Of a stretch of 64,000 bases of DNA, positions 30,701 through 62,563 are shown piece by piece. The notes below the pieces were generated by a model. That model ran no database searches, was not told the DNA's origin, and saw only the letters and a list, made by a program, of their open reading frames with translations. Both the position numbers and the translations under genes were made by a program. This stretch comes from Utricularia gibba (Eukaryota > Plantae > Magnoliophyta): the NCBI GenBank assembly GCA_002189035.1, contig NEEC01000002.1:5766001-5830000 (forward strand). Reading direction: 5' to 3'. Position 1 is the first letter of the stretch; each line of letters starts with the position of its first letter.

Positions 30701-32189
30701 CAATCACTCAGCTCATTTCGTTCCAAATTGCCCCCCTCATTAGATCTGCTGCGGTGGATTCAAGTGGCAAAGAGTTCAACAGGAATCGGTTGATAGCCCT
30801 TATGTCTGCTATTGTCTTAGAGGAAGTATAATACAGTTATATGCATTTTAGAAAAAAAATGTCAGTTTGGTGCCTTCCTGATTTCAGTTCTTACATTCAG
30901 CACCCTGGAACCACTATCGTCACAGATAGTGTGACTTCAGATGGATTGACTTCATTTATTGAAAAGAAGCTTGGTAAGCTCGGTAGCATAGATACGTTCT
31001 GAGAGTGAACTTGCTTACGGACCATTTTACTGCAGGTGGAAGGCACCACAGGTTCAAGAGAGGGTATAAGAATGTGATAGATGAAGCTATTCGTCTGGTA
31101 TTTCTTGTTTATGAAAGACTAGTTATGAACCTAGTTCGTTTTCTTAACTAATTTTTGAAACTGCGGCCAATTGACCTATTTTGCTGGTTTAACAGCCTGT
31201 TATGTTTCTTTTTTCTGAGTTTGAGGCGAAATTCAGCTATCTACATGTTTGATATATGTTGCAGAACGCTGTTGGTGACGAATCACACTTGGCAATTGAA
31301 ACCAGTGGCCATGGGGCGCTCAAAGAGAATCACTGGCTTGATGATGGTGCCTATCTTATGGTACCGTTCTTTGTGCGCCAGACTTACTTTCCCTTCATTT
31401 CCGTAGTTATTGTTTCTGCAATTATCATGCATCATTTCGTTGATCAGGAAGTGAAATGTGTGGATGTCCTGAATGTTTAACCATTTCATAGGTCAAGGTT
31501 TTGAACAAACTTGCTTCAGTCAAGGCGTCTGGTTCTAGCAATGGCAGCAGGGTTCTGACTGACCTGGTAGATGGCCTAGAGGAACCGGGTTTTGCCAATG
31601 AACTCAGACTCAAAATTGATCAGACCCATCCAGATCTTAAAGAACGGTAACATTTTCTAAAGCTTCCACCTTCTCCCTGAAATCCTGCACACCAAAGTCA
31701 CTATGCTGCCTTCCTTCTTCAGGGCATTTGCCTCTTTCCGTGATTATGGAGAGGCCATTCTTCAGCACTTAACAACTGCAGTTGATTCAGACCCAAGACT
31801 CCAGAAAGCCCCTGTGAACTATGAAGGGGTTAAATACGATACTCTTCACATCATATCCATCTCCTAAACTGCTTTCTGACCCCATGATAACCAAGTTTCT
31901 GGTTTCTCAACAACAGATAAGGGTGTCTGGCTACGGCGGGTGGTTCCTCCTGAGGCTCTCCCTTCACGATCCTGTTTTACCCCTTAATATAGAGGTTGAC
32001 ATTTTACTGATACCCGAGCTCCTTTGATTCTCTTCTGTGAAGACACCTGAGTTATTCTGGCAAACAAAATCTTTCCTGCAGGCACCAAACCGGGAGGATG
32101 CTGTGCAGCTTGGCCTTGCCGTCCTCTCCGCCGTGAAAGGATTCCCAGCTCTTGATACCACCTCTTTGGAGAAGTTTGTCCAAGCTTAA
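27731..32189 (+). CDS. Phosphoglucomutase/phosphomannomutase (alpha-D-phosphohexomutase, AlgC-like) family protein with N-terminal transit-like extension
   Basis: Multi-exon. Motifs FLKLQNG|SDIRGVA, VGHDSRIS, catalytic-Ser loop IMIT|ASHLPFNRNGLKFF, metal loop FDTDVDR, IETSGHGALKEN; ends LEKFVQA*. The first micro-exon (ATGAAGG) is tentative. Confidence 0.9.
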
Positions 32190-33265
32190 CGGAGCACAAC
32201 TTCAACATGCCATGAGCTGCATCACTGCGGGTGGCATGTCGGGATAGTATCCAATGCATGCAATAATTGAATAAATACCCTGAACTGGGTTTTTTTTTTT
32301 TTTTTTTTTTTTTGTATCCGTTGATCAAAAATCGGTGAAGGTGACATGGGTTAGTCTATGATTTTAGATCATTGGTTTTTTATTTGAAATTAATATCAAA
32401 TTATGAGGTTGCTTAGAACATTTTTTTGGTTTTAAAAAAATATCTCAAAATCAATTTAAAATGTAATGTGAGGAGGTTAATGACAGAATCGTATATTAAT
32501 TATGAATTGAGACAGATGTGTGCTTGAATATAGAGATTATTTTAATTTTGCATGATCCATTTTCTTTGGAATGATATAATATAAAAATATGAGATTTGAA
32601 TACCTAAAATAGGCAATATCAATATCAAAGTTAAACCCAAGTATGTATCAATGATGGAATGAGAGGGCATTCAATAGTAGTATTAGTATCTAAGAAAAAC
32701 TGAATATAATGTCAATGAACTAATAATAATATTTCACATTGGTGACAAACAAAAATCAGAATATACTTTAAATAGAAGAACATTCTTAATCTTGTACAAG
32801 TCATTTTTTTTTTCAAAAAAAAGAAGTAAAACTATAAGGATTGATTGTCCAAAATAGTTAATATCATGTAAAATAAATATGATTTGTTATATTTTTATTA
32901 AATATGAAAGGTTTGTTTTTAAAAATATTAAAAATTTAGAAAATATTTATTTTTCTAATAAAAGCAATATTTCATAAACAAGTTTTTTTTTATAAAATAC
33001 GAACAATTTATATATTTAAAAAATATATATTTAGATGTATTTTTATTTTTAAAAACTATTCCGAGGTGTCCACGTCTGCAATTCGAGCCCCTCGAGCAAT
33101 TGGGCAATTTTCAAAATTCCACTCCCTGGCGGTTGACGCCTTGCTCCGGTACTCGTTCATCTCTGTTGCTTCCGCATAGGCTTCCGGACAATGCTTGTTT
33201 CCAGATTTCATAGCAGCCCCGACTCTGAGTTCTGAATTGGAGGGGATTCGAGTTAGGGTAAGAGA

Positions 33266-36099: not shown

Positions 36100-36480
36100 T
36101 CTTTCTTGTAGGCATTTTACTGATACCCGATCACGTTTTCTCCCTTAACATAGAGGTGACATGGCGCTCCTTTGATCCATCTTCTGCAAGGAAACCTACT
36201 GTGAAGCTTGCTTGGCCTTGCCGTGCTTTCTGCCGTGAAAGGGTTCCCAGCTCTTGATACCAGCCCTTTGGAGAAGCCTGTCCAAGCCTAACGAGGCACG
36301 AGCTCAACATACCATGAGCTGGATCAGTACGGGTCGCAGGTAGGGAGATAGCATCCAATGCATTGCAATAATGATAAATACCCTGAACTAGGCAGTTTTC
36401 CTTTTTGTTATTGTATCCCTTGATCACAAAATCGGTTGTGACAAAATGGGTTAGTCTACGATTTTAGATTAAAACATTTT
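36100..36480 (+). pseudogene. Rearranged duplicate of the last exons and 3' UTR of the PGM-like gene
   Basis: Aligns with about 31965-32400, e.g. CTTGGCCTTGCCGT..GTGAAAGG.TTCCCAGCTCTTGATACCA..CTTTGGAGAAG and TCCAATGCAT..AAATACCCTGAACT. Confidence 0.85.
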
Positions 36481-36919: not shown

Positions 36920-37050
36920 TATCCGTAGGTATCCACGTCTGCAATTCCGAGCCTCTCCTCGAGCAGTTTCATAATTCCACTCCCTTGCGGTTGACACCTT
37001 TCTCCGGTACTCGTTCATTTTTCTGTTGTTTCCAGATTTCATTGCCAGAA
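36920..37050 (+). repeat. Duplicate of the RMI1 core promoter/5' leader (33060-33210), now upstream of the RF2-like gene
   Basis: Shared blocks TCCACGTCTGCAATT, CTCGAGCA, ATTCCACTCCCT.GCGGTTGAC.CCTT.CTCCGGTACTCGTTCAT and TTCCAGATTTCAT. Confidence 0.85.
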
Positions 37051-38612: not shown

Positions 38613-39053
38613 TCAGACCTTGAGTTGGAGCCGTGAGGAGAAGGGAAGCTATTGTATTGCATTAATCCTTCAACTAGATTTTGTTGCTTCATTGAACGGG
38701 TTTTGTTCTTATTTTGAACCCCCAAATACTTCATCCTCTTCATCTCAACATATAGATCTTGAACCCAGGGAGTAAAAGTCCATATCTTGACCACTGACCA
38801 CGGTAACTTGTTACACAACGACTTGGCTGTTTTACTGGGGCATCTGATTGCTCTCTGTTAACTAACTCTTCCGCATCTGCTGGTAAGATCCCATACTTCA
38901 GACTCCAGCATGCGTGCTGTCGTTGACTCCATTGCAGCTATTTATCAGAGTTCTTTTCTGATAGGTTTGCGAAGTTTCCATCTTGGGTTTCGTTTGATCG
39001 AGAAAGCCGAAGAAACCTACTTTCTTGACTTCTGGCGCTACCAGATCGCTAAA

Positions 39054-40514
39054 ATGGATTCCGAAACCGTACCAGTGTTGACCTCGATTGATAAAGTATC
39101 CGAATCTGTGATTCTCGAAGAAGAAGACCATTGTGATGCGGCTCTTCTATCGCCAGTTTCGGACTCTTCCTCTCCTGATTCCATCAAAAAATCTGCATCC
39201 ACCACTGGTGCGTTCATGTGCCTCGTTCTCACTACATGCATTGCTCTGTCTGCAGCCGCTGCCTTTGCGTTCTTGTTTTTCTATACTTCATCGGCGAATT
39301 CGAGGCATGGGAGAGAAGTATCGAGACCACTGAAGAAGCTGAAAAGCCCAGTTGTTATACTGATTTCTTCTGATGGCTTTAGATTTGGGTACCAATTCAA
39401 GGCGAATATGCCGAATTTAGAGAGGCTAATCAAGAACGGGACTGAAGCTGAGATGGGCTTGATTCCCGTATTTCCAACTCTAACTTTCCCGAATCATTAC
39501 TCTGTTGCCACAGGCTTATACCCAGCTTACCATGGGATAATCAATAACTTCTTCTCTGATCCAGAAACGGGTGATTTCTTCACAACATCTAACCATGAAC
39601 CGAAATGGTGGCTTGGTGAACCCTTGTGGGAAACAGTGGTGAACAACGGGTTGAAAGCTATGCCATACTTTTGGCCCGGTTCTGAGGTAAAGAAAGGATC
39701 CTGGAATTGCCCTGAGAAGTATTGCATGTCTTACAATAGCTCTGTGCCTTTTGAAGATAGAGTTGAGACTGTTCTTGGGTATTTTGATTTGCCGAATGAT
39801 GAGATTCCTTCTTTTATATCATTGTACTTTGAAGATCCTGATCATCAAGGGCACAGAGTTGGGCCAGATGATCCTCAGATCACTGAGGCAATTATCAGAG
39901 TGGACGATATGCTCGGAAAGTTAATCAAAGGCTTAGAAGCGAGACAAGTCTTTGAGGATGTGAGTATCATTTTGGTTGGTGATCATGGAATGGTTGGCAC
40001 CTGTGACAAGAAGTTGATCTTCATAGATGATCTTTCAAAATGGATCGACATCAAGAGTGATTGGATTAATTCGTATTCACCGGTGCTCGCCATTCGTCCT
40101 CCATCCAACTTTTCGCTCAAGGAAGTTGTGAACAAGATGAATGAGGGGCTGAAGTATGTGGATAATGGTCAGCACTTGAAAGTGTACCTAAGGGATGATC
40201 TTCCAAGCCGGCTTCACTATTCCTCCGGTGATCGGATTCCGCCGATCATAGGATTGCCTGAAGAAGGATACAAGGTTGAGCAAACTAGAGGCAAAAATCA
40301 GGAATGTGGAGGATCACATGGATATGACAACGCATTTTTTTCCATGAGATCAATTTTTGTTGCTCATGGGCCTCGGTTTCGGAAGGGGTTCAAGATCCCT
40401 TCTTTTGAGAACATTGAGATATACAACGTAGTTATAGCCATCCTCAACATCCATGGAGCTCCTAATAATGGGAGTTCATCATTTTCAGAGAACATTCTTT
40501 TGCCTATTCACTGA
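39054..40514 (+). CDS. Ectonucleotide pyrophosphatase/phosphodiesterase (NPP, alkaline-phosphatase superfamily), type II membrane, intronless
   Basis: Motifs VILISSDGFR, catalytic PVFPTLTFPNHYSVATG, DPDHQGH, GDHG and GSHGYDN; N-terminal TM helix. Likely start is MDSETV at 39054. Confidence 0.93.
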   Translation: MDSETVPVLTSIDKVSESVILEEEDHCDAALLSPVSDSSSPDSIKKSASTTGAFMCLVLTTCIALSAAAAFAFLFFYTSSANSRHGREVSRPLKKLKSPVVILISSDGFRFGYQFKANMPNLERLIKNGTEAEMGLIPVFPTLTFPNHYSVATGLYPAYHGIINNFFSDPETGDFFTTSNHEPKWWLGEPLWETVVNNGLKAMPYFWPGSEVKKGSWNCPEKYCMSYNSSVPFEDRVETVLGYFDLPNDEIPSFISLYFEDPDHQGHRVGPDDPQITEAIIRVDDMLGKLIKGLEARQVFEDVSIILVGDHGMVGTCDKKLIFIDDLSKWIDIKSDWINSYSPVLAIRPPSNFSLKEVVNKMNEGLKYVDNGQHLKVYLRDDLPSRLHYSSGDRIPPIIGLPEEGYKVEQTRGKNQECGGSHGYDNAFFSMRSIFVAHGPRFRKGFKIPSFENIEIYNVVIAILNIHGAPNNGSSSFSENILLPIH

Positions 40515-45108: not shown

Positions 45109-45423
45109 TCAAGTCAATCGTAGTTCTGACATCATATAATACTTGCGGCAATCACTACAACAGAATTTGTAATTCCTGCAAACCAAATATCTCCACTTAG
45201 TGCCATGTTTATTTTGTCTATAGAAAAAAAAAATGAAAGTTATCATTTTAGTACACTCTGCTTACTTGTATTTGAAGGCATCACAAGCATAGCGGATTGG
45301 CGTCTTGCACTCATGGCACAAATAACCAATTAGGTTTGCTTGTGTAGACCCAGACCCAGAATCTTTGGCTGAGGATTTGGAGTCTGATTTCTTTTCCTTG
45401 TTGCTTGTTTTGTTTTTCGACAT
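45109..45423 (-). CDS. Short FLZ-like Zn-finger protein, copy S1 (74 aa)
   Basis: Exons 45423-45266 and 45175-45109, GTAAGC...GCAG intron. Protein MSKNKTSNKEKKSDSKSSAKDSGSGSTQANLIGYLCHECKTPIRYACDAFKYK|NYKFCCSDCRKYYMMSELRLT*, pattern CX2C-X17-FCCX2C. Confidence 0.75.
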
Positions 45424-46875
45424 CGTTGTGATTATGGAGTGTGCAATGATATTATATAGAGGTTAATATTATATATAAATATAAAAATGAAGTAATAACT
45501 ATTGTCTTTTTATTCTTTTTTAATTAATACAATGAAATATTAGAAATTAAATGTTGTTACAATAATTTGAATAATTAAAGTGTAAAAAATTAATAGGAAT
45601 TCATATAATAAGTTTTCTTCAACTATAAAATCATCGAAAATTAATTTAATAAAAACGAATAATATCATACAAATAAGTCAAGTATATGAATATTTGGTGT
45701 ACTACTACAAAGATTAACATAACATAAAAACGTTTAGAATATATGAACCACATTGTTATTTGTATTAAAATAGTTATATTTATAATAAAAAATTATTTTG
45801 AATGATAAGTATAAAACACAAATTTCTATTTAAATATTTAAAAGATTAGTAATTTTCAAAATTAAAAATTAAAATCAAAATTGGGTAACCGATTAATATT
45901 AAGTTATAATTGAGTTAGTCGATTTAGAAGGAACTTCTAAGAAGCTATTTGTGCAATAACAAATAATAATTATAATATTTAATTTAATTATTTTTTACTA
46001 AAACATATCAACATTTAACATTGAATACATTTAAAACTTTAATATTATAAATGATGATGTTAGTGTTGCTTCTATTTCGAGATTACATTTAAATTATTTC
46101 GAAAATTCAATATTCAAAAAATTTAATTCAATTTCGTTGTGAATTTTTGATTATTTGATTAATATATTTTACATATGTATTTAATTTTATATGTTAGAGA
46201 TAGAAACTTAATGTTATAATATTATATATATTTTTATATATCGCTAAATGAATTTAATGATAATATAATTAACTATATCATTTAATTTAATTTTAAAATT
46301 TATAATATTGTAATTAAATATAACATTGTGATTAAAGTCGTGTGTATGAATTATATATTTTTGAATAAAAATATTAACAAAACCTCATATATAATATAAT
46401 ATTATTTTATTCGATATAGAATTTTATAAATAAAAATAAAATTATATGTATAATATATAAATATTATAAAATAAAGCATTAATAATTGAGGGATTTCAAA
46501 ATCAATCTCATCAATGTCAATTTTGTAGGTATTTAGTATACCTCCAAATCTTCAAGTTAAGTGAATAATCATACTAATGAAAGTCATAGTGTTGCTCATA
46601 CTTAGTAATAAAAAAATAACTGTAGTTTTAAATATGCACACGGTAATTTGTGTATTTGTAAAAAGTACTATCTATCAACTCTATGAAGTATGTCATCCTC
46701 GCAGTATAAGATAAGACATATGATATGTACTAATATATAATCTTAGTACATATATACATATTCATTGAGTATCATGTTTACTTTATTCAAAAATAATAAT
46801 AATAAAGCATGAACGGTACCACTTTAATACCACTGATAATACATAAATTTCAATAGTTTTGGATGAAAAAAAGAA

Positions 46876-48700
46876 TGGTGTTATCCGAAAAAGTTAGGAT
46901 TTTAAATAGAATTTTAATATTTTTGCGAGTATCAGCATGATTTTAACATTATATTTAAGATTGTGATTAAATCTTTGATTTAATATCAATCTTAATTTAA
47001 TCTTCTACATTAGAGTTATGCGTCGCATTTTTAGCAAATCAAATCCCAATAAGCCAATGGTGCATAGGATATGAGAAGAAAATTGGAGATAAAAGGAGAG
47101 AGAAAAATTGAAAAGGTGTGAAGCTGTTTTTATTAATGTTGTTGTTTGATTTCTTTTTGTTACTTTGAGACTTGAGATATGTTGATGATATTATTTTGTA
47201 AAATCAATTTTGTTGTTCTTTGAGGCCAAAATGAAGTAAGTATAATTATTGATTATTAGATCATACTAATTAGATTATTATACTAATTCTTTATGAAAAC
47301 AAAATAGTTCCAAAAGGAAGAATAGATGATATATTTATTTTAATATAAACCTAACTAGAAGTAGAGCAAAGGTTAGGGAGAATAAAGAATTTAGATAGAT
47401 TTAAACCTTCTATTTTATTTGATGAATGATTTTTAGTTTGGATGAAATACTTATATTGATGAACATATCACTTGTGAAAAGATTCAAAGTATCGTATTAT
47501 TTATTTTTATACAATAATTTGATTTGCTTATTTATCGATTTTGTCGTATCCTACAATTGAATTTTGTTAGTTCTAGATTAGACCTAATATTCAATTTTAA
47601 TGAAACAAAATGCATTAGTATTCACACACAAAAAATCTTGCTCTTCATGTTCTACACTCATTCCATTATGCTCATATTTGATTGATGTTTGACTGAGAAT
47701 GCATTTTATAAATTTATTTAATATAAAAATTAACAATTGAACATGATTGGTGAAATTTTTAGTTAATCGAATTGGTGTCATTGCCAAGGAGGGGTGTTTA
47801 ATTGTTAAGTGTTATAATTGATGCATTTGCATTTCTTCTTGTATAGGTGATTTTGATTTCAATTCTCAAATTGAGAGGGTTGCTAGGAAGAACTAAAATA
47901 GAATAAGAGAAGCAGCCAAATTGAGGAGAATCCTAACTACAAACTAATTTAATTTGAGTATGGTAAAACAAGAGACAACTTTGAACAAACTATATGCATC
48001 AGATTACACATATAGGGAGTTGTGTTTAGATTTTTTTTATAATACAACTAATGAATTAAAACAAATCATGATAAATTTTATGTCAAAGTATTATGAAAAA
48101 GAGGTAGATAATCCATATGAACACTTGGACAATGTTAACAATTTATATATCCTTCAAAAATAGTGAAATGATAGAGTATGTTATCTATTTGAAATCATTT
48201 CAATTCATAATAAAAGAGAACACAAAGATGTGATTTAAGTATGTTAGATGTCGAAAAATAATTGATTGATCTAAAACGAAAAAAAATGGTTTAATTAAAT
48301 ATTTTTCAGTTTTTAAGATAGAGGAAATTAAAAAAAAAAAAAATCAATGGTATCGAACAATTGAATGAAGAATAACTTCACAAATATTGATAACATTTGA
48401 ACCATCATTTAGGATCTTGTACGTACCACAAATTTTGGACTAATGTACTGGTAAAGTATTTTTTATGATGGATTACTTTGTATTAATTGTGCAATAGTTG
48501 ATTCAGGTGTTATAGATTTATTGAGAAAAAAAAACACTCACAGGAGGCTGTAGGTTTACTTGAACAATTGGCTGAACACTACAGTCATATTATCAAATTA
48601 TAAGATTCAAATATAAGAGTTTATAAAGTGTAGTGCAACCTAAAAACATCAAAAATTGATCTGACAAGAAATGTTAGTTGAAGAAGAGCATGTTAGTATC
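46876..48700 (+). mobile_element. Decayed Athila-like Ty3/gypsy remnant (LTR, PBS, gag N-terminus)
   Basis: TTGGTGTCATTGCCAAGGAG at ~47772 resembles a CpG-decayed Athila PBS (TGGCGCCGTTGCCGGGGA). Gag-like TLNKLYASDYTYRELC...ELKQIMINFMSKYYEKEVDNPYEHL, followed by stops and frameshifts. Confidence 0.7.
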
Positions 48701-48933
48701 CAAACTTACTGATAGGTATCCAAACTTATTAGTATGCAAAATTGAGACATATTACTAATAAGTATTCAAACTTACATGAAGAAGAACATGTAAAAGTCAA
48801 TGGGATATTTAGAACTGCAAACAAGAAAGAAATACAATCCATACTTAAATACCTACAATTCATGATGGACAGACTATCCCAATTTTAGATAGAGCAACAA
48901 ATGATCACTCCTACAAGGAGCCACCATGTTTTC

Positions 48934-50759
48934 CTAAATCTTATGCACAGTGTACCCAGTATCCTCTGTTTTAAAGTCTTCCTGCCAATTCTCCATTTCA
49001 GTTCCACCAAAAGTCATTTGCTTGATTCCTATGTAACTGCATAGCAACAAGCGTGCAAACTAAAGTCTCTGAAGTCATGGAATGCGTAGAATTCAAAAGT
49101 GAATGCAAAGCTCCAGAGACAGCCATATTCATGAGGACGGGTACTTGAGATTCTTACTCAGAGCTCACTTGAGTCAGGGCATTAATCAAAATATCCAGCA
49201 GCAAAGGTTCTGAGGTGCCAATATCCACCCTGGAATTACGAACTCTAAGTCTCCGAATGAAGAAAGCAAGGGAACAAACCCATAAAGATATCCAAATTTT
49301 TACCATATTCGAGCTAAGTTATCTTGGATTTCAAGTTCACCGATGTTGTAAAAGGTGGTTGGTGTAACATTTGCACCTTGAATAGCATCATAACTTGGTG
49401 TTTTGTCGAGAGGGGATTGTGACAACTGTTGAGAAAAGAAATCAAATATCAATATGAAACAGGTTTCGAAATGGAGTCACCCTAGACCCCTTCTCTTCTA
49501 AAGTTTGCAGTATAAACAATACAGAGATATGAGAAGCATACCTGCATATTCATGGCATTGCACCCACCAAGCCGTCCAACAATGTGCCATGCACGAATAG
49601 TCTGAACATTTTTTCTGGTAATAATTGAAATAGGCATGATACAAATTATATCAATGAAACTAAAGCTGAATACACTTACATCACATATCAGGGAAACATC
49701 CTTCTCGAGTGGGGCATTGTAGAACTCCAACCATATGTATGAATTAGAGAAGTCAAACCTGGGTCGTGTCCAGAGAAAATTGATTCCTCAGCAACTAGCT
49801 TATAATTGCACAGACCAATGCAGGAGTGCTAGAAGGAAAAAAAACACATCCTAAAGCATGCCAATGAACTCTCTACTGCAGTAACCCCTCCAGCAAAATC
49901 CAAGTCTCATTAATGCGAATGGCTGAATAAACTATTTTTTGGTTCTTAGTTCCATAAAAAAAGACACTCAACCTAGGTGCTCTAATGATCCATGTACACC
50001 GCTAGAGAAGAAAATGATTTTATTTACCAAGGTCACTTGAGTAGCCTGCACAGAGGCACATAACTTTCAACAAACTACACATTTCTCTGTTCCAATCAAC
50101 CAAAACCTGGGAAAGGGGATGCGGGGAGCCAAACTAATGCTACTTGGATTTATTCAACGACACCAATGTAAGTGCAGAAATCTTCAGAAAGCTCACTTGT
50201 TAAACTTTACTTTCATTGGGTGTGGCGAGCCAGTTTTGGTATGCAATATCTTATCCCTCTTCCTCCTCAGTCGCTCTTCCATCTAGCAAAGGATTTATAA
50301 ACTAAATCATATAACATCACTTTCCAACAAAAGAAATCCGTAAAGAAGCAAAACATATCACAGTGGGTAGTTTCCTCTAGAATCAAAATCGAAACATCAG
50401 CATAGAGATTACGCAATTTTAAAGCCACTTACCTTTGACTTAGCCTTTGCAGGGTCATCAAGGGAAGCGCCAATAATCTCCGCAAGCTCAGGATCTCTGT
50501 CATAATCCTTTTCTCTTGCTTCACCCCGCCAAGAGAAATCTGTATCATCCTCCATTTCATCATCACTCTCAACACCAGAACCGAGAATTTCCACCCGGGA
50601 CCCGATATTGTCGCTTCTCTTCACACAGACGAAATGCCAACCCCGCCATGGGGATCTTTTATTACAAAAAGACGGGTTGGAGCTTAGAAACGGAAGTTTC
50701 CATGATATTGCAGGAAATGAGGGGTAGAGCGGACGCAAACCAGGCTGGAGAGCCAGCAT
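48934..50759 (-). CDS. Chloroplast DUF3531-type protein, intact, 7 exons
   Basis: Transit-like N-terminus, then EKDYDRDPELAEII...AKSK|MEERLRRKRDKILHTKTGSPHPMKVKFNK|FDFSNSYIWLEFYNAP...|TIRAWHIVGRLGGCNAMNMQ|LSQSP...FYNIGELEIQDNLARIW|VDIGTSE...|YIGIKQMTFGG...TVHKI*. The DUF number is from recall. Confidence 0.8.
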
Positions 50760-51451
50760 CACGAGGCTTGAAGTTCGGCTTCAGGAAACGGAAAATCGCC
50801 ATGGAAAATATAATTCACAGAAACATTGAGCCGCAATAATTGAAAGATCCGGGCCCAAGCCCAATATATTTTCCACACAATGATTTGAAAACCCTAATAA
50901 ACGGATAATTCTAAAAAAATGACATATAAAATAATCATTTTTTGCACATATTCTGACAAATGATCAATTTTCTAATTGATCCCAATAAATTTCAATTAAA
51001 TTAGATCATGTTTGATACAATTCGTTAAAATCATCGATTTTTTTTTTTGAATTTCAGACTCTCAATTTATTCTAATTAAATTATAATTGAATCACAGTTG
51101 AATTGTTATTGAATCGTGATTCATATTTTTTTTTCTATTTTAAAATGACTCAAGTTTAATTTAAACATTATGATGAATGATTAATGGTTGAAAAATGTTA
51201 AACTGCGATTGAAGTATAGTTTTTAATACATGGACTTTTATTAAACTGTTGATTTTCACAGAGTGAAGTAGGACTTTTTAGTCTAATGAGAAGAGAACAA
51301 TAGCTATCTAATCATTAACTTAACATGCATTTCCATTAGAATTGTGTCATTTATGTTTTTATATTAAAATTTTTATTTAATAATAATTTTTTAATATATC
51401 AATTTGACACCAGTTACTATAATCCATTAAAAATATATAATTACCCGTCAT

Positions 51452-51830
51452 TTACTTATCCTTCTTATTTTTCATATACGCCGACGTCATTCTAAAATAG
51501 GGTCTTTCTATATTTAGATCCGTTCCCGGCGCCGCCCTCCTTTGCAATGCAGCTTCATCGAGCGCCATCTGCAAACGCCGGCATTGCTCGGAGCAGTACC
51601 CACAGTCCCTGAAAAGTGAAACCCACCGCATCTCAGAGCGTCGTCACCCACCACAAATGCGATGCATAGAGAGTGCGAGTGAGTTACCTGTACATGAAGA
51701 CGTTCTTCTTGCAGTAATCGCAGCGCTCCAGAAGCTTCTCACCTGCTCCATTTCCGATGGGTTTCGTGTCTGGGACGATGGAGAAGATGCTGGAACTTGT
51801 TGACGTATCTTCGTCCGTTGGGTAGTCCAT
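51452..51830 (-). CDS. FLZ Zn-finger protein, YCS subtype, copy Y1 (99 aa, shortened finger)
   Basis: Exons 51830-51688 and 51608-51452. Reads ...EKLLERCDYCKKNVFMYR|DCGYCSEQCRRLQMALDEAALQRR...RPYFRMTSAYMKNKKDK*. TATA-like CTATATA upstream. Confidence 0.8.
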
Positions 51831-52989
51831 GTCGCTGCGCTGCGGTGTCCGATACGCTTCACAAGTGTCTGAATATATAGCTGAAGGGTGGGAAGTCTTT
51901 GGGCACTTGTAATCACCTGACATTGAAAGAGTTGAGGGAAAGGGAATTGGGATAATTTATTAATGGTTTTATGAATTTTATTTTAAAAAATTCAATTTAC
52001 AGAAAATTTGATTTCGTTTCATTGTGAATTGTGGATATTTCATCAATATTTTTTACATATATATTTAATATTATATGTTCAAGATAGGTATTTCATGTTA
52101 TAATATTATATATTTTTCAGATATCTTATTCATGATTAAATGTATCATTTAATTTAATCTTTTTGAATTTATAATATAATCAATTATATTTTTGAATATG
52201 AGTATTAAAAAAATATATAAAAACAATATAATTCAAGAAATTTTAATTAAAATGTGTTGTATTACATTATTCGAGATAGAAATTATAATAAGATATTAAT
52301 ATAAGAGAAAATTATAAAAACTGATAAAATTGAAATTGAATAATTAAATGATCTGTATCTAAATTATTTTTTGTCCAATATATTTAAAATCAATATCTAT
52401 AATTTATGTATAAACATAATTTTTGGTCTTGTTTGTGAATATAGTTTGAATGAGTGAATTTTAGATTTTTTTTTACATTAATGTCATCTTATCCTATGAT
52501 GATCAACTTATATACTTACAATAAGCTCTTTTTATTGTACTTATGTATTTTTTTCAATGCAATAGTTTTGATATTTCTAAACCTAGTTTTTCAAACTCAT
52601 CACCTATACTTCCTTTGTACGATATTTTCCGTTTCGAATAATCTATTTTCACGGTTTTATGTTATTCTTTTTTCTAAAAAAAATATCATATAAAATTATA
52701 AAGATCCATGAATTTAAACATACACTTTTCACAGCACATAATTAATGTGGAATATCATCATTAGATTTCTGATCTTACATTCATCTCATTTTATACTAGA
52801 ATGCGTTCGGGTTTGGCTATGATACTGAATGATCCATCCCTCAAAACTACAAGTTAAGGTGATCATCCTACTACTATAGAAAGTTATAGTATCATATTAA
52901 ATAATAGTAAGATAAATGTAGTTTAAGATACACATAGCAATCTGTGTATCTACACAAGGTACTATCGATCAAGGCTATGAAATCAAAAA

Positions 52990-53280
52990 AAAAAAAAATA
53001 CTTGCAGCATTTACTATAACAAAATCTATAATTCATGCAAACCAAACACTTATATTTAATATCATATTTACTTTTTCTATAAAAAAAGAAAGCATGAAAA
53101 TGTATCATTTCAATGCACCCTACTTATATACGTGGCCATCATGATAAGAACGGATTTGCATTTTGCACCCATGGCACAAATCAACAATTGGGTTTGTTTG
53201 TGTAGACCCACACCTAGAAGATTCAACTTAGGATTTGTAACTGATTTCTTTTCTTTGTTGCTTGTTTTGTTATGTGACAT
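52990..53280 (-). pseudogene. Short FLZ-like pseudogene
   Basis: Exon 1 (53280-53124) is 1 nt short and has an in-frame TAA. The acceptor CAG has mutated to CAT, and exon 2 decays into a poly-T run. Confidence 0.8.
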
Positions 53281-53499
53281 CGTTGTGATTATATATTGTG
53301 ATGATGTTCTATAGAAATTAATGTTGTATATAGATATTAGAATAGAGTACTCTCTTCTATCTTTTGATTCCTTTTTAATTAATACAATGAAATATTAGAA
53401 ATTGTATTTTATGATAATAACTTCAATAATTAATGCGTGAAAAATTAATATACATTTATATGATAAGTTTTCTTCAACCGTAAAAAGCATGAGATCTAA

Positions 53500-54010
53500 T
53501 AAATTAGACTTCACATATGTTCTATCCTCATTCCATTATGCTCTTCTTTGATTGATTTTTGAATGAGAATAAGTTTTATAAATTTATTTGATTCGAGAAT
53601 TAGCAATTGAACATGATTTATGAAATTTTCTGTTTATTAAATTGGTGACATTGTTGACGAGCGGTGTTTAATTTTTATATGTTATAAATGATGCATTTTC
53701 ATTCTTCTTATATAGGTGATTTTGATTTCAATTTTGAAATGGAGAGGATTGTTAGGAAAAACTAAAAGAGAGAAAGGAAATCAGCCAAATTGAAAAGACT
53801 CCTAGCGACAAACCAATTTAATCAGATTATGGCAAAACTTTGAATAAGCTAGATGCAACAGATCACACACATAGAGAATTGTGCATTAGATTTTTTGATG
53901 ATACAATCAATGAATTAAAACCAGTCATGATAAGTTTTATGTCAAAGTATTATGGAAAAATAGAAGAGAATCCACATGAACACTTGAACAATGTTACAAC
54001 ATATTACATG
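53500..54010 (+). mobile_element. Second, shorter copy of the Athila-like remnant
   Basis: Aligns with 47620-48140; gag-like ELCIRFFDDTINELKPVMISFMSKYYGKIEENPHEHL. Confidence 0.7.
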
Positions 54011-54309
54011 TCTGATAAATCAAAATTTCGATATCATTGCAAGAAATTAAATTTTCGTATCAAATAAATTTGTAAGCGTTAATTTTCATAAAATACAAAT
54101 AAAACACTAATTGCACCATAGAATTTCGAGATCAATTATAAAGAACAAATATTTGCTATGTATCTTAACTTATACAGGATCACATAATGATTTCAATCTT
54201 AGTTTAAGATTGAACTAACAACGATGCATAAATTCATTAAATAAAATCTAGTTATAGAGCAAAATGTAACAAATATTAGTTCTAAATAAGAAATAACAAT
54301 AGGCCGCAC

Positions 54310-55012
54310 AGAGTCACATAATTTTCAACAAACTACACATTTGTGTGTTCCCATCAACCAAAACCTGGGAAAGGGAGGAGCGAAACTAATGCTACTTGGA
54401 TTTGTTCAAAGACAACAATGTAATCGCACAAATTTTTAGAAAGCTCACTTGTCAAACTTTACTATCATTGGGTGTGGCGAGCCAGTTTTGGTATGCAATA
54501 TCTTATCTCTCTTCCTCCTCTACCTCTCCTCCATCTAGCAAAGGATTTATAAACTAACTCATATAACATAACCTTTCCCAACAAAAGAAACCGTAAAAAA
54601 GCAAAACTTGTCACTCTGGGTCGTTTCCTCTAGAATCAAAATCAAAACATCAGCATAGAGATTAAGCAATTTCAAAGCCAATTATCTTTGACTTAGCCTT
54701 TGCAGGGTTATCATGGGAAGAGCCAATAATCTCCGCCAGCTCAGGATCTCTGTCATAATCCTTTTCTCTAGCTTCACCCTGCCAAGAGAAATCTGCCTCA
54801 TCCTCCATTTCACCATCACTATCAACACCGGAACCGAGAATTTCCAACTGGGATTCAATATTGTCACTTCTCTTCACACATACTAAATGCCAATCCCGCC
54901 ATGGAGAACTTTTATTACAAACCGATGGATTGGAACTTAGAAACGGAACTTTCCATGATATCGCAGGAAATGAGGGGTAGAGTGGACGAAAACCGAGGTG
55001 GAGAGTTAGCAT
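54310..55012 (-). pseudogene. Truncated duplicate of the DUF3531-type gene (exons 1-2 only)
   Basis: Aligns with ~50050-50760. The exon-1 donor GT has mutated to GA, exon 2 has a TAG at codon 5, and downstream exons are absent. Confidence 0.88.
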
Positions 55013-56193
55013 ATTGAATTTCAGGATCCGATGGATCTAGCAAATGATTACATTAAGTCTAAGTATATAATAAACGTAAATAACAATAGAAAAGATTAGA
55101 TACAATCGATTATTTATGATTTATAATTTCTTATATACTTGATTATTTAATTTTCATTTTTCAATATAGTATTGCGTATTCTAATATATGCCCTCAAGTC
55201 AAATTGGTCTTCGATTCTGTTAAGACTTGTTTTTTTTTGTTTTTTTTTTGTTTTTGTTTGATTATAGGTAGTATTTATATAATATATCGATCTAATTTTT
55301 TGTCGTTTAAATCCAATGCATTGAAAGCTTTAATCATTTTTCCCAAAATTTAATCTAAATTTCAATTTTTGGATTCAATCCAAAATCCAAAATTTTTTCA
55401 AAAAAATTGACATGATATTTAAATATGAATGTTGTCACATTTTACATTATTTAAGTTTCTTTAAACATGTTTAAAATTAAAAAAATGTGTTTGATATATC
55501 AATTTAAATTATTTAAATTTATGTTAGATATCCCATGGTATATAAATTTGAAATAGTTGGTTTTAAAAATGATTTTGATTAAAATTATGTTACTATGATT
55601 AAATTACTAACCTGCTTAAAGTTTAGTACAAGAATGCTACTATGGTTAAAATTTAAAAATACATTAATTTTTAAATTTTAATTTTAATACAAACCTGTTT
55701 AAATTGTTGTAATAATATAAAATATAATTTACCGATTTATAATATTTATAAATACAATTATTTAAAAAATATAATTTCAAAAATTTATATATTTACAAAA
55801 TATGAATTTTTATGTATGATTATATATATATATATATATATAATTTATAAATTGACATGTCTTTTTTTTTTTAATTTTGAAATATTAAATTATTAATTAA
55901 ATCATGATCGAGTTGTTAATGATTCATGGGGTGTTCCTATTCGTTTTGGAGTCGTTAAACAACCCTTGTGAGAAGAGAACAATTGCTATCTAATCATTAA
56001 CTTAACATGCATTTCCATTAGAATGTTTTTATAATAAATTTTTTTAATATATCAATTTCACGCCAATCACTATAATGTTGCTCTAATATATAACGAGCGT
56101 ATAATAACGTCCCCAAAACTTACATTTTTTTTTATTTACAAAACTTAAGAACAGTTCATTATAATCCACTAAAAATATATAGTTACTGGCCAT

Positions 56194-56661
56194 TTATTTA
56201 TTCTTCTTATTTTCCAGATATGCCGACGTCATTTCAAAATAGGGTAATCTTATACTTGGATTTGAATGCGTCTCCTTCCTGTATAATGCAGCTTCATCGA
56301 GCGCCTCCTGCAAACGCCGGCATTGCTCGGAGCAGTACCCAAAGTTCCTGAAAATTGTATTGTAAATCGAATACCAAAAAGACAAAAGATTAAAATAAGC
56401 CAAGTTCACTCTTAAAACCATCAACATTGATGAATTAATATATCATATAAATAAGTTTAATTTCTCTTCAACTAGCAATGTGGGATAGCAAGTTATTCTC
56501 GTGAGTTAGTACCTATACATGAAGACAGTATCCTTCGGGGAGAGACCCTTCTTGCAGTAATCGCAGCACTCCACAAGCTTCTCACATGTTCCCTTTCCGT
56601 TCGGTTTCGTGTTTCGGACGACGGTGGAACTTGGACACGTCTCTTCGGTTGTGTAGTCCAT
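56194..56661 (-). CDS. FLZ Zn-finger protein, YCS subtype, copy Y2 (100 aa)
   Basis: Exons 56661-56513 and 56347-56194. Reads ...EKLVECCDYCKKGLSPKDTVFMYR|NFGYCSEQCRRLQEALDE..., pattern CX2C-X17-YCSX2C, with a phase-2 intron at MY-R as in FLZ genes. CTATAAATA upstream. Confidence 0.88.
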
Positions 56662-56889
56662 GTTACTGAGCTGCGGTGTTTGATACGCCTCACGAGTGTC
56701 TGTATTTATAGCTGAAGGGAAAAGGGGATTGAGATAATTTATTAATGGTTTTATGAATTTATTTTAAAAAATTCAATTTCATGAAAATTTGATTTCATTT
56801 CATTGTGAATTTATGGTTATTTGATCAGTATTTTTTAGTTAATTTGTTTATGTTCAAGATAGGGTTTTCATGTTGTAATATTAGTAGTA

Positions 56890-57160
56890 CCTCCAGCTTT
56901 AATGAAGCACATTAATCGAAACTCTAGTACAATTTTCCATGAAGTGTTGAAGATTTCAATACTTCTAAGCCCTTAATTACTTGGGTCGGGCCTTGAGGTA
57001 TCGAGTCGAGCTCATGCTTGATAGGCTTGACTCGATTACGTGCATCGAGTCCGATTGATAGATGAAGCTCGGGTTCAGACTCATGTAAATTGAACTCAGG
57101 CCGAGTCTTTATCGAGCCAAGCTTCGAGCAGCTTGATAAATGCTCGGCCCAATTACTCAA
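56890..57160. mobile_element. GAGCTCGA/TCGAG-rich non-autonomous DNA-transposon-like insertion
   Basis: Repeated TCGAGTCGAGCTC, GACTCGA and ATCGAGCCAAGCTTCGAGC motifs. Absent from the paralogous positions near 44120 and 52100. Confidence 0.55.
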
Positions 57161-58070
57161 TTATATTTTTTGAATAAAAATATTGACAAAAATTTACAAA
57201 AACAATATGATTTAAAAAAACTTAATTAAAATTTATAGTATTACATTATTCCAGATGGAATTTATAATAAAATATTAATGTAAGAATACTATACAAATTT
57301 ATAAAAATTAAGAAATTTGATTATTATATGTCCAATATGTTGAAAATTAATATATATAATTTATGAATTAAAAATTAATATTTGGTTTTATTTGAGAATA
57401 TGGTGTTAGGGAATGAATTTTGGATTATTTTAATATTGAAATGAAATAGTAATTGAGATTGGTTTGATGATTTGCAGAGCATTACACCTTGCATTAATGT
57501 CATCTTCTTCTATGATACCCAACTTGGAATGAATGTTTACAATGAACTCTCTGCATTAGACTCATGTATCTCTTCAAATATAATCATTTTGATACTTTGA
57601 GACCTAGTTTTTTGATTTTATAAATTTGATCCTCTCTTGGAATGATTGGGAGTTTTCATATTCATGATCTACACTCCCATATATGATATTGTTTGTTTTA
57701 AATATCTAATCATTATGTTTTACGTTTATTTTTTCAAGAAAAAACCTCACACAAGATTAAGATAAACCCTTTATTTAAGTGCGTCCCCACTCATATTCGT
57801 AATCAATGTGAGATATTGTCATTAGATCTCCGACCTTCAATATCTCCTTTTAAACACACAACATTTTTGCCATGTGCCCTTGTCCCACCCATTAGCATGC
57901 GTCTACATTTGGCTATAATGCTAAATGTACTCTCAAAACTACAAGTTAAGTCAATCGTCATACTACTATAGAAGTTTATAATATTACTCATATCAAATAA
58001 TAGTAAGATAATTATAATTTAAGATACACCAAGTAATTTATGTATCTACACAAGATTCTATATATCAATA

Positions 58071-58397
58071 CTATGTCAACCATCGTTCCAACTTAATATA
58101 ATACTTGCGGCATTTACTAGAACAGAATCTGTAATTCCTACAAACCAAAAATCTCCACTTACTTCCATGTTTATCTTGTTTATAAAAAAAAAAAAAAAGA
58201 ATGAAAGATGTCATTTCAGTGCACCCCACTTACTTGAATATGCGGGCGTGGGCATCACAAGAATAGGGAATTTGCTTCTTGCACAAATGGCACAAATCAA
58301 CAATTGGGTTTGCATGTGTAGATGCAGACCCAGAAGCTTCGGTGGAGGATTTGGAGTTTGATTTCTTTTCCTTGCTGCTTGTTTTGTTTTGTGACAT
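58071..58397 (-). CDS. Short FLZ-like Zn-finger protein, copy S2 (76 aa)
   Basis: Exons 58397-58234 and 58137-58071, GTAAGT...GTAG intron. Protein MSQNKTSSKEKKSNSKSSTEASGSASTHANPIVDLCHLCKKQIPYSCDAHARIFK|NYRFCSSKCRKYYIKLERWLT*, pattern CX2C-X19-FCSX2C. Confidence 0.8.
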
Positions 58398-60007
58398 TGT
58401 GGTGACTGTGTAGTATGTAATAATGTTCTATAAAGATTAGTATTATATATAGATATCAGAATATAGTGTTTTATTCTATATTTTATTCTTTTTTAATTAA
58501 TATAATAAAATATTAAAAATTTTATTTTGTGATAATAACTGAAAGTGTGAAAATTAACAGCATTCATATGATAAATTTTCTTTAACCAAAAATAAAATAA
58601 AAAATGAATAGTATTGTGCAAATAAAATGAAGGTAGGAATATTTGATGTACAATCACAAAGATTAACATAATGCAAAAAAGTTTAGAATATATGACATAC
58701 ATTGTTATTTATATTAAAAACAGTTATATATATAATAGCAATTGATATTTAAATGATAAATATAAAACATAAATTTTTATTAAAAATATTTAAATAATTA
58801 ATAATTTTCACAATATGAAATTAAAATCGAAATTGGTTAATCGATTAATATTAAGTAGATTTATTTTCATATAAATCAAGTGAGTTAGTCGATTTATTAA
58901 TATTAATTATTATAATTTATAAAAATGTGTATAATCGTAATTTCATTCTTAATTTTCATATAAATGCTATTATCTATTGATTTTTATAAAATTGAATTTA
59001 TTCTGAAATATTAATTCTCATTAAAATAGAATTTGATATATATTTCGAAGAAAAAAATAATTCTATTAGAATAAAATTGATTTTAAAGAATTCCAAACAT
59101 TCATTTAGTCGATTTTGAGCAAGTTTCTACAAAACTAATATTTAATTTGATTACCTTCAACAAAAATATATTAAAAATTAATATTGAAGACATTTAAATA
59201 ATTTAATATTATAAATGATGGTGTTAGTTTTGCTTATTTTTCGACATTGCATTCAAATTATTTCACAAAATTAAATATCCAGAAAATTTGATTCCATTTC
59301 GTTGTGAATTTCTGGATATTTGATTAATATTTTCTACATATGTATTTAAGTTATATTTTGAAGATAATAAATTACATATATATATTTTCATATATCCGTA
59401 AATGAATTCATTTATAATATAATTAAATATAGCATTTAATTTAATCCTTTCGAATTTATTATATTATCATTTAAAAAATATTTATGAATCTTATATTTTT
59501 TGAATAAAAATATTAACAAAACCTTATATATAATATAGTATTACATTTTTCGATATAAAATTTTATAACAAAATTAGAATATATTTATTAATATAACAAT
59601 TTTATAGAACATGATAAAAATTGAAAATCAAATAATCAAGTGATATAACAAAATTAGAATATACCTAAGTTATTATATATCCAATATATAATATATTGAT
59701 ATATTTTTTTTTGGTTTGTGAATATAGTTTGGACTAGTAAAGGTGGGAATGAGTGAATTTTAGATTTTCTAATGTTGGAATGAAATAGGAATTGAGATTG
59801 GTTTTTCACACCCAACTTTAGTTATTGCTTTGGATGAGATCTGTATTAATACAAATTGTATATGAAAAATTGAAAGTGAAATTATTATGCATATAATAAA
59901 TTCCAAATCAATAGTAATTCATTGATTCTAATTTTTTTAATCTGATCCATATTTATGTGTGCTTGCTCGATCTATCGAATTCTTAATTTCAATAATCATT
60001 GTATTAG

Positions 60008-60476
60008 TGTAACGACTCAATCTTGACTTGCATGATATTGCTTGTTTCGGGCTCCCAACCATTATGGTTTTACGTTATCCCCTTTTAGGAAAGAAGCCTC
60101 ATACAATATTAGGATGGTTCATCTATTTAAGCACGTCTCCTCTCTTATTCGTAGCCAATGTAAGATACTGTAATCATCATAAGTCATTTGGTCTTACATT
60201 CTTCCCCTCTTAGACACTTAATGTCCTCGTTGAATACCATCTCATCCCACCATTGGTTCAAGCTAGAATTGACTTTGATATCAAATGTAACGATTCACCC
60301 TGGTTTTGCATGATATTGTCCACTTTGGGCATTTGACCCTCATGATTTTACATTTTCCCCTTCGGAGGAAAAGACCTCATGCAAGATTAAGATGTTTCCT
60401 TTATTTAAGCATACTTTCTCTCTCGTTCATAACCAATATGAGATATCGTAACCGTCACAAGGTGCTTAACCTTACA
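60008..60476 (-). mobile_element. Complete TRIM (terminal-repeat retrotransposon in miniature)
   Basis: Two 191-bp TG..CA LTRs (60008-60198 and 60286-60476) flank an 87-bp internal domain. On the minus strand this carries a decayed tRNA-Met PBS (TTGATATCAAAGTC) and a PPT (AAGAGGGGAAGAA). Perfect 5-bp TSD ATTAG. Confidence 0.88.
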
Positions 60477-60720
60477 ATTAGACTATCGTATCCTTTTCAA
60501 TATAATCATTTTGATATTTCAATACCTAGTTTTATGATTCTATGCATTTCATGCTCTCTATGAATGATTAGGAACTTTCAAGCCCAACCTGATCAATCTC
60601 AATATTGATGGGTATTCAACATAACCCCAAAACTAAAACTTAAGGCAATCAGCATATTACATTTGTTTATGTACCAAAGATGCTATCTATTAATAGTCTG
60701 AAAATCAATCATCCAATATG

Positions 60721-60989
60721 CTATAGTTCCAGGGCCATATAATATGAACAACATTTACCAGTATAGAATCTTTTATCCCTGCAAACCAATACATTTCCAT
60801 TCAGTACCATGCTTTCTTTATCTAAACAAAGAACGCATGAAAGGTAGCATTTGTGTGCAGCCGACCTACTTGTATATGAAGGGACTTCGACAACTGATTT
60901 TTTCCTTGCATGTATGACATATATAAAGAAGAGAGTTTCTAGACCCAAATGCAACAACTTTGTGATGAGGTTCGTTTGTTCTCTGACAT
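60721..60989 (-). pseudogene. Divergent short FLZ-like pseudogene
   Basis: Exon 1 (60989-60870) is out of phase (120 nt, TAG in the ATG frame). Finger relics LYICHTCKEKISCRSPFIYK|DKRFYTGKCCSYYMALEL show FCS changed to FYT. Confidence 0.7.
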
Positions 60990-61806
60990 GGTTGCAACCG
61001 TGTAGTTTGTAATGATGTGTTGATGGAGGTGAGTTCTATATATAAATATCATATTGAGTCATCTACCTTTCTATTTGTTTTTAATTAAAACACCTGAATC
61101 TTGGAAACTAGATTTTGTTACAAAGATTTAAGTAATTAAATTATGTATATTCATATGATACATCTTTTTGACAGAAAAAGGCGTAAAACTGTAAGAAAAT
61201 GGATTTGATAAAAATGAATTATATTGTGCAATGCGTATGTCAATATTTAGTGTAATACCACAAAGATTAACAAAATACAAAAAAAACTTTAAAATATAGG
61301 ATCTACATGTTATTTTTATTTAAAATAGATATACTTATAATAAAAGTGATATTTAAATAAAAATAATTTTTAATTTGATTACTTTTTCCAAAAAAAATAT
61401 TACCATTTAACATTATTGTATATGATTTATGTTTAGAGTGCCGACACTCTATGTGATATTACACATCATTTTGTTAACACATCATGGGAGTCCTTTACAT
61501 TCCAGATTGTGATCCCACTCATGTCAAAAGGCAATGTGACATATTGTCATTATGTCCATGACATTACATTATCTCCTTTTAAGCACTCAACATTTTTGCT
61601 ATGTGCTCTTGTCCCACCCATTAGTATGCGTTCACATTTGGCTATAATTCTAAATATATTCTCAAAACTACAAGTCAATCATCATACTACTATAGAAGTT
61701 TATAATATTGCTCATATCGAATAATAGTAAGATAATTATAGTTTAAGATACAACAAGTAATTTATGTATCTACATAAGGTTCTATGTATCAAGGCTATGA
61801 AATCAA

Positions 61807-62122
61807 TCATCGTTCCAACGTAAGATAATATTTGCGGCATTTATTAGAACAGAATGTGTAATTCCTGCAAATTAAACATCTTCACTTAGTTCCATGTTTA
61901 TTTTGTTTATAGAAAAAAAATAAGAATGAAAGATATCATTTCAGTGCACTCCACTTACTTGTATATGTGGGCATGGGCGTCACAAGCATAGCGGATTTGC
62001 TTCTTGCACGCATGACACAAATCAATAATTGGCTTTGCTTGTGTAGATGCCGACCCAGAAGCTTCAGCGGAGGATTTGGAGTTTGATTTGTTTTCCTTGC
62101 TGCTTGTTTTGTTCTGCGACAT
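61807..62122 (-). CDS. Short FLZ-like Zn-finger protein, copy S3 (73 aa)
   Basis: Exons 62122-61959 and 61864-61807. Protein MSQNKTSSKENKSNSKSSAEASGSASTQAKPIIDLCHACKKQIRYACDAHAHIYK|NYTFCSNKCRKYYLTLER*, pattern CX2C-X19-FCSX2C. Confidence 0.8.
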
Positions 62123-62563
62123 CATGGTGATTGTGTAGTATGTAATAATGTTATATAGAGATTAGTATTATATATACACATCAGAATGGAGTAATTACTT
62201 CTGCCTTTTTATTCCTTTATAGAATAAAATAATGGAAATTGGATTTTGTTACAATAACTTAAATAATTAACGTGTGAAAAATTAACATACATTCATATGA
62301 CACGCCTTCTCTAATGGAAAAAGTTGTAAAACTGTGAGAAAATGATTTTAATAAAAACTAATAGTAGCGTATAAATATAATGAGTGTATGAATATATGAT
62401 GTACAACTGTAAAGATTAACATAATACAAAAAAAGTTTATAATCTATGTACATTTATTAAAACAATTATATTTATAATAATAAGTGATATTTCAATGATA
62501 AATATAAAACAAAAATTAGTATTTAAAATATTTAAATGATTAATGATATTAGAAATTAAAATC

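Follow-up and report, generated by a model that had tools for sequence, protein, structure and literature searches.

We analysed a stretch of 64,000 nucleotides of the Utricularia gibba genome (contig NEEC01000002.1, positions 5,766,001 to 5,830,000; hereafter the window, in whose own coordinates all positions are given), whose right-hand third carries an array of very small genes that probably encode FCS-like zinc finger (FLZ, DUF581) proteins. This part of the window, from about 44 to 64 kb, is very AT-rich (21-32% GC) and contains diverged local duplications. Comparison of the spliced products with the window by tblastn revealed seven loci, all on the minus strand, and none in positions 1-44000. 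An earlier interpretation made from the letters alone, the sequence-only reading, had proposed at least seven two-exon minus-strand loci, five with open frames and two disrupted. We recovered exactly seven, divided in the same way, with the five open ones lying where they had been placed. They belong to two subtypes, A and B, and on the minus strand they follow one another as A3, psiA2, A2, B2, psiA1, B1, A1. The two subtypes were thus confirmed, whereas the alternation between them that had also been described is only rough.

Splice models were obtained by enumerating every GT..AG intron that gives an open frame, and a single sensible two-exon model was found for each intact locus. All five intact loci have one intron and two coding exons, as is typical for FLZ genes. 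The intron is in phase 2 in every case, is 79 to 165 nt long, and occupies one homologous column of the alignment, one residue past a conserved Tyr/Phe and four residues ahead of the (F/Y)C pair. Donor sites read AA^GTAAGT or resemble AG^GTAAC, and acceptor sites resemble TTTGCAG^G (^ marks the junction), so that the canonical splice sites and the shared phase-2 position noticed earlier hold in all five. The exon open reading frames (ORFs) of type A are all between 45 and 56 aa long and are therefore absent from a 60-aa ORF list, which bears out the remark that the short copies escape such a track. A TATA box lies at a constant distance upstream of the ATG in every intact copy, at -54 in type A and at -49 in type B; for instance, TATATATAA is found 54 nt upstream of the A1 ATG, and CTATAAATA 49 nt upstream of the B2 ATG.

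Table 1. Coordinates of the array loci, of the duplicated units and of the neighbouring gene in the window.
Feature	Position	Strand	Structure	Product	Basis
A3, intact type A	61807..62122	-	exon 1 62122-61959; intron 94 nt, phase 2; exon 2 61864-61807	73 aa	
psiA2, diverged broken type A copy	about 60715..61010	-			tblastn, five-locus alignment
A2, intact type A	58071..58397	-	exon 1 58397-58234; intron 96 nt, phase 2; exon 2 58137-58071	76 aa	
B2, intact type B	56194..56661	-	exon 1 56661-56513; intron 165 nt, phase 2; exon 2 56347-56194	100 aa	
psiA1, type A pseudogene	about 52985..53280	-			tblastn, five-locus alignment
B1, intact type B	51452..51830	-	exon 1 51830-51688; intron 79 nt, phase 2; exon 2 51608-51452	99 aa	
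A1, intact type A	45109..45423	-	exon 1 45423-45266; intron 45176-45265, 90 nt, phase 2; exon 2 45175-45109	74 aa	
Duplication unit pair	47647..58856	-			self-blastn
DUF3531 gene, inside the array	about 48900-50762	-	multi-exon; exons 49154-50762		Pfam matches on three exons
C2, fragment of the DUF3531 gene	54300..55012	-	exon 1 only		88% identical to 50042-50759

We compared the spliced products with the zf-FLZ profile of Pfam (PF04570), for which the gathering cut-off is 23.4 bits. Both type B products scored above this value (B1, 29.7 bits; B2, 37.5 bits). The exon 1 half of B2 alone matched profile positions 7-34 with 23.5 bits and the exon 2 half of B1 alone matched positions 35-53; the intron therefore lies between positions 34 and 35 of zf-FLZ. 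The B2 finger reads CX2C-X17-YCSX2CR, with Y replacing the F of the signature. In B1, the spacer between the second Cys and the F/Y residue is only X11 because of an in-frame deletion of 18 nt, which left exon 1 (51694-51702, minus strand) without six residues of the finger loop, GLSPKD in B2. Apart from this deletion the B1 finger is nearly identical to that of B2, synonymous sites included. Outside the finger, type B products consist of about 30 N-terminal residues and of a conserved C-terminal PYF-x-MTSAY motif. Judged by these profile matches, type B is a member of the FLZ family with a genuine though divergent domain.

The type A fingers read CX2C-X17-FCCX2CR in A1 and CX2C-X19-FCSX2CR in A2 and A3. 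Among Pfam families, zf-FLZ came first with A2 and A3 and second with A1. When type A was aligned to type B with hhalign, a probability of 81% and an E value of 1.2e-5 were obtained, and the alignment placed the introns of both types in the same column (Y-K^N-Y-x-F-C-S versus Y-R^N-F-G-Y-C-S). Residues of the published motif that are kept in type A are C, C, I (for L), D, Y/F, F, C, C and R. With respect to the extended FLZ motif, CX2CX3LX4DX3YX5FCSX2CR (PMC8037668), the named residues are present or conservatively swapped in the array (L to I; Y to F in A2; F to Y in type B), and the spacings are off by one or two residues. Type A has in addition a fifth conserved Cys directly before the conserved Asp, A2 and A3 have two extra residues between D and Y, and the finger is accompanied by a tail of about 33 Lys/Ser-rich residues. 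FLZ domains are expected to have an alpha-beta-alpha fold with a single zinc ion; a single-sequence AF2 model of A2 was of low confidence (pLDDT 59), with helices at residues 31-39 and 62-75 and no hairpin, and the Foldseek matches to it were meaningless. Taken at the level of sequence, type A is a strongly diverged FLZ derivative that fails the formal Pfam model.

Towards its 3' end (45176-45217, 58138-58180 and 61865-61900, minus strand), the type A intron is open in the frame of exon 2 in A1 and A2 (…KHG[TS]KWR[YF]LVCR^NY…) and carries a TGA in A3. This segment contains alternative AG acceptors, and alternative splicing is possible. The in-frame KWRFLVCR at this 3' end was considered as a relic of an intron-less FLZ half and rejected, as the segment is made up of the polypyrimidine tract and the acceptor and is interrupted by the TGA in A3.

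The two disrupted loci are both of type A. In psiA1, a 1-nt deletion in exon 1 causes a frameshift with a stop, both splice signals are gone (a 4-nt deletion at the donor, loss of the acceptor AG), and the TATA box, which is kept in the intact type A copies, is mutated to TATATACAA. Deletion of 29 nt puts psiA2 out of frame after 16 codons; its third Cys codon reads TAT (Tyr) instead of TGT, and Pro has replaced the conserved Asp. The GT and AG dinucleotides are still present.

Alignment of the window to itself by blastn revealed two collinear tandem copies of a unit of about 5.5 kb, 58856 to 53517 and 53485 to 47647, which share blocks of 70-88% identity in the same order. In each unit a type A locus comes first, followed by a type B locus and then by the opening part of the neighbouring DUF3531 gene. 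At the DNA level the copies are paralogous, and the array is therefore not due to chance. Exon 1 of the DUF3531 gene (50409-50762) resembles an N-terminus bearing a transit peptide. From its sequence, the C2 fragment is a passenger that was carried along by the duplication.

The two type B genes bear several marks of maintenance. Identity between the two is 82-86% in the exons, 53% in the intron and 69% in the flanks (P 9e-8), and the four indels in the exons, of 3, 9, 18 and 3 nt, are all in frame. Non-synonymous divergence amounts to 0.074 in the finger versus 0.307 in the rest of the protein (P 1e-5). For type A, 8 of the 10 motif positions are invariant, versus 14 of the 32 other positions of the finger (P 0.048), and the pair A2-A3, alone among the type A pairs, nominally shows fewer non-synonymous than synonymous changes (dN < dS, P 0.03).

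Searches for relatives gave no close annotated relative of either type. A word-index protein search returned no candidate for A2 exon 1, B1 exon 2 or full B2. Searching 1.84 billion representative proteins with A3 by phmmer gave no true relative, the one match being a repetitive Cys-rich ORF that is not an FLZ protein, and no relative was confirmed in metagenome contigs searched with alignments of type A exon 1 and type B exon 2. A look-up of A2 exon 1 in the ESM Atlas was uninformative (best score 0.81). This lack of close annotated relatives may reflect lineage restriction, or a general failure to annotate such small split genes.

Could the units be pieces of genes that a non-autonomous transposon of the Pack-MULE or Helitron type picked up and amplified? 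The very AT-rich surroundings (21-25% GC) would suit such an origin, as would the small dispersed repeats, for example 55063-55186, which matches 6603-6965. We found no terminal inverted, direct or long terminal repeats bracketing the duplicated units and no transposase or reverse transcriptase ORF in 42-64 kb, where the longest ORF (117 aa) is part of the DUF3531 gene. The copies are strictly local and collinear and include the first exon of the neighbour, as segmental tandem duplication predicts, and none occurs in the other 44 kb of the window. Because bracketing terminal repeats, transposon ORFs and copies elsewhere in the window are all missing, the sequence identifies the array as a product of segmental tandem duplication and not of transposition. 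Transposon capture is accordingly very improbable, and the units did not turn out to be transposon-internal sequence, an outcome that the sequence-only reading had named as fatal to its proposal. It is also highly unlikely that type A derives from something other than FLZ, that is, from an unrelated small Cys-rich family or another finger of the TRASH clan (zf-FCS/MYM, zf-HIT or YacG-like) lying beside FLZ genes. In favour of this, phmmer retrieved no FLZ protein, type A has weak matches to zf-FCS, zf-HIT, YacG and DUF7836, the last ranking above zf-FLZ for A1, and all type A scores are below the zf-FLZ cut-off: 13.9 bits for A1 (E 0.039), 17.1 for A2 (E 0.0039) and 20.9 for A3 (E 0.00025). 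These points are opposed by the Pfam ranking of A2 and A3, by the alignment of type A to type B with its common phase-2 intron column, by the presence of both types in one duplication unit with the same core-promoter layout, and by the retention of the FLZ-specific L/I, D, Y and CR positions. The FLZ identity first proposed for the whole array, with a profile search as its check, was thus upheld for type B; for type A it failed at the cut-off and stood as homology to B.

We then weighed whether the array is a decaying relic, a recent local amplification of FLZ genes that are no longer, or were never, expressed, and whose intact copies have merely not yet been disabled. Besides the low type A scores, a series of observations speaks against maintained FLZ genes and for such a relic. 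The ratio of non-synonymous to synonymous divergence (dN/dS, NG86 method) is 0.99 for the whole genes B1-B2 and 1.03, 0.59 and 0.38 for the type A pairs, with the value near 1 belonging to A1-A2. The type A exons (83-89% identity) are not better conserved than the intron (84-88%). Neither type shows the strong purifying selection known from FLZ genes (Ka/Ks about 0.3), clear constraint being confined to the type B finger. Two of the seven copies are dead, and the X11 loop of B1, six residues short, falls outside both the FLZ range (17-19) and the zf-FCS range (14-30). The fraction of sampled words that seven RNA runs from the species share with 56150-62140 and with 56150-58450 is 0.00, whereas DNA runs do share words with these intervals, and no RNA run was shown to hold the loci. 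Spliced A2, A3 and B2 are not on record as gene products in a collection that may not cover the annotation of this genome; the A3 exon 1 ORF, the DUF3531 exon and a 534-aa ORF at 38910-40514 are likewise not on record in this gene-position collection, and annotated relatives were not found. Against a relic, we placed the observed exon substitutions at random and scored whether the start codon, the GT and AG of the splice sites, an open frame and all four ligand Cys survived. For type A, with 28, 9 and 17 substitutions from a three-way consensus in A1, A2 and A3, respectively, the probability of survival was 0.03, 0.32 and 0.12, or 0.0011 jointly, in a test that was post hoc, took a three-sequence consensus as ancestor and was limited to the five copies of type A that the window contains; for the B pair it was 0.002. 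Such retention is improbable at random, and a relic would also have to account for the in-frame type B indels, for a B finger whose conservation exceeds that of the remaining protein fourfold, for the excess of synonymous changes between A2 and A3, and for a TATA box lost in psiA1 and kept in the intact copies. The decay that the sequence-only reading had offered as a refutation, with dN/dS near 1, is thus seen in part, in ratios of 0.4-1.0 and in type A exons that diverge like their intron, and is countered by the retained frame, splice sites and ligands. As far as sequence comparison goes, the evidence for function is good for type B and mixed for type A. The tests, which are post hoc and use very few short sequences, favour fast-evolving maintained genes over plain decay but do not amount to proof, and we regard the relic as unlikely. 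The claim of a fast-evolving tandem expansion in two subtypes is in line with the dN/dS values of 0.38-1.03 and with the birth and death of copies.

Rfam gave no match in 43-64 kb. Other repeats and genes were noted in the window. Short local direct repeats are present between psiA2 and A2 (60008-60183 versus 60286-60461, and 57555-57658 versus 60477-60580), and they hold similar plus-strand ORF fragments (…KKPHT/ARLR…YLS…). A repeat about 124 bp long (75-76% identity) is dispersed in the window: it occurs in tandem at 6603-6725 and 6841-6965 and in inverted orientation within the array at 55063-55186, and it may be MITE-like (like a miniature inverted-repeat transposable element). The gene-rich part of the window contains collinear repeat blocks about 4 kb apart with 80-81% identity (32108-32369 versus 36210-36469, and 33060-33173 versus 36922-37033). 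The 534-aa ORF mentioned above is uninterrupted, lies on the plus strand and resembles a nucleotide pyrophosphatase/phosphodiesterase-type protein.

Our preferred interpretation, which we consider reasonably probable, is that the locus is a tandem birth-and-death cluster of very small FLZ genes, whose products would be expressed, fold with zinc and act on the kinase SnRK1. Unequal crossing-over would have duplicated the unit of about 5.5 kb, which carries one gene of each type together with exon 1 of the DUF3531 gene, and some copies would have decayed afterwards. The type A finger still has its zinc ligands and its FCS signature, together with an intron that would be ancestral. The intact copies are presumed to be expressed, and each product would fold round one zinc ion. 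In characterised FLZ proteins, the finger is reported to bind the catalytic alpha subunit of SnRK1 and the disordered N-terminal region to contribute to binding of the beta and gamma subunits, so that together they form a scaffold (PMC8037668, which cites a JBC study of 2018); Brassica FLZ proteins show the same interaction with SnRK1 (PMC11641214). By analogy, the fingers described here may bind SnRK1 alpha. The products would then act as small modules with bound zinc, sitting on SnRK1 alpha at the site where FLZ proteins bind, and would compete with, or modulate, the full-length FLZ scaffolds. Small competitors or modulators are likelier than full scaffolds because a very short N-terminal tail replaces the long disordered region. 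The fast change of loop residues would leave room for a shift to other partners.

A bolder version of this proposal concerns type A only. It would consist of unannotated, lineage-restricted FLZ-derived microproteins of about 75 aa, with a Lys/Ser-rich tail, a fifth Cys and a rapid turnover of surface residues, present in perhaps a dozen or more copies kept by diversifying selection and acting as decoys or competitors for SnRK1 alpha, or for some novel partner, with their action confined to a tissue such as the reproductive organs. We consider this version improbable. FLZ proteins are adaptors of SnRK1, the central energy-stress kinase of plants. If expressed, the genes of the array would provide natural finger-only versions, useful to map what the FLZ finger does alone, and would illustrate rapid diversification in tandem within a family whose usual mode of growth is whole-genome duplication under purifying selection. 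The array also suggests that two-exon genes with exons below 60 codons may escape annotation, none of the products searched being on record. For now the practical weight of these points is modest.

Plant microProteins are small single-domain competitors of larger relatives. The predicted products of the array resemble them in size and in consisting essentially of one interaction domain from a larger family. The zf-FCS/MYM fingers (PF06467, TRASH clan) likewise carry FCS at the third Cys, with a variable spacer of X14-30, and both types match them weakly; they differ in being said to be absent from plants (PMC4047054), and the scores of our products are lower with them than with zf-FLZ. The closest comparison is with the FLZ family itself, which has the signature CX2C-X17-19-FCSX2C and numbers 10-48 genes in many plants (PMC4047054). 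Like Arabidopsis FLZ1-18 (PF04570), the array genes have a C2-C2 finger of this form followed by CR and a predicted helix (PMC4047054, PMC8037668), located near the C-terminus after a disordered N-terminal part, and two coding exons, the number usual for FLZ genes (PMC4529292, PMC13554139). The signature fits A2 and A3 (X19 and FCS), A1 (X17 and FCC) and B2 (X17 and YCS), but not B1 (X11). The differences lie in the products, which are at the small end of the family (73-100 aa), in type A, with its fifth Cys and scores below the cut-off, in the Y that type B has for the signature F, and in dN/dS values of 0.4-1.0 versus about 0.3; in soybean, FLZ genes have a mean Ka/Ks of 0.30 and are under purifying selection (PMC13554139).

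The expansion of FLZ families was mostly by block or whole-genome duplication, tandem duplication being uncommon in most species surveyed (PMC4529292, PMC13554139). AthFLZ17 and AthFLZ18 are likewise small tandem-duplicated FLZ genes with the same gene structure (PMC4529292), but form a single pair, whereas the array has many copies, two diverged subtypes and pseudogenes. BniFLZ19-25 of Brassica nigra form a dense cluster attributed to tandem duplication, which includes BniFLZ19, with 69 aa the smallest FLZ protein of that study (PMC11641214). By its published description, the Brassica cluster spreads seven genes over about 108 kb, versus seven loci in 17 kb here. The sequence-only reading had seen in the array a candidate for an undescribed system. 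This was an overstatement, since the FLZ family is well known and a dense cluster of small FLZ genes has been published in Brassica nigra (PMC11641214). The array is denser and more diverged than the published FLZ clusters and includes a subtype below the family model; it is a new cluster within the known FLZ family.

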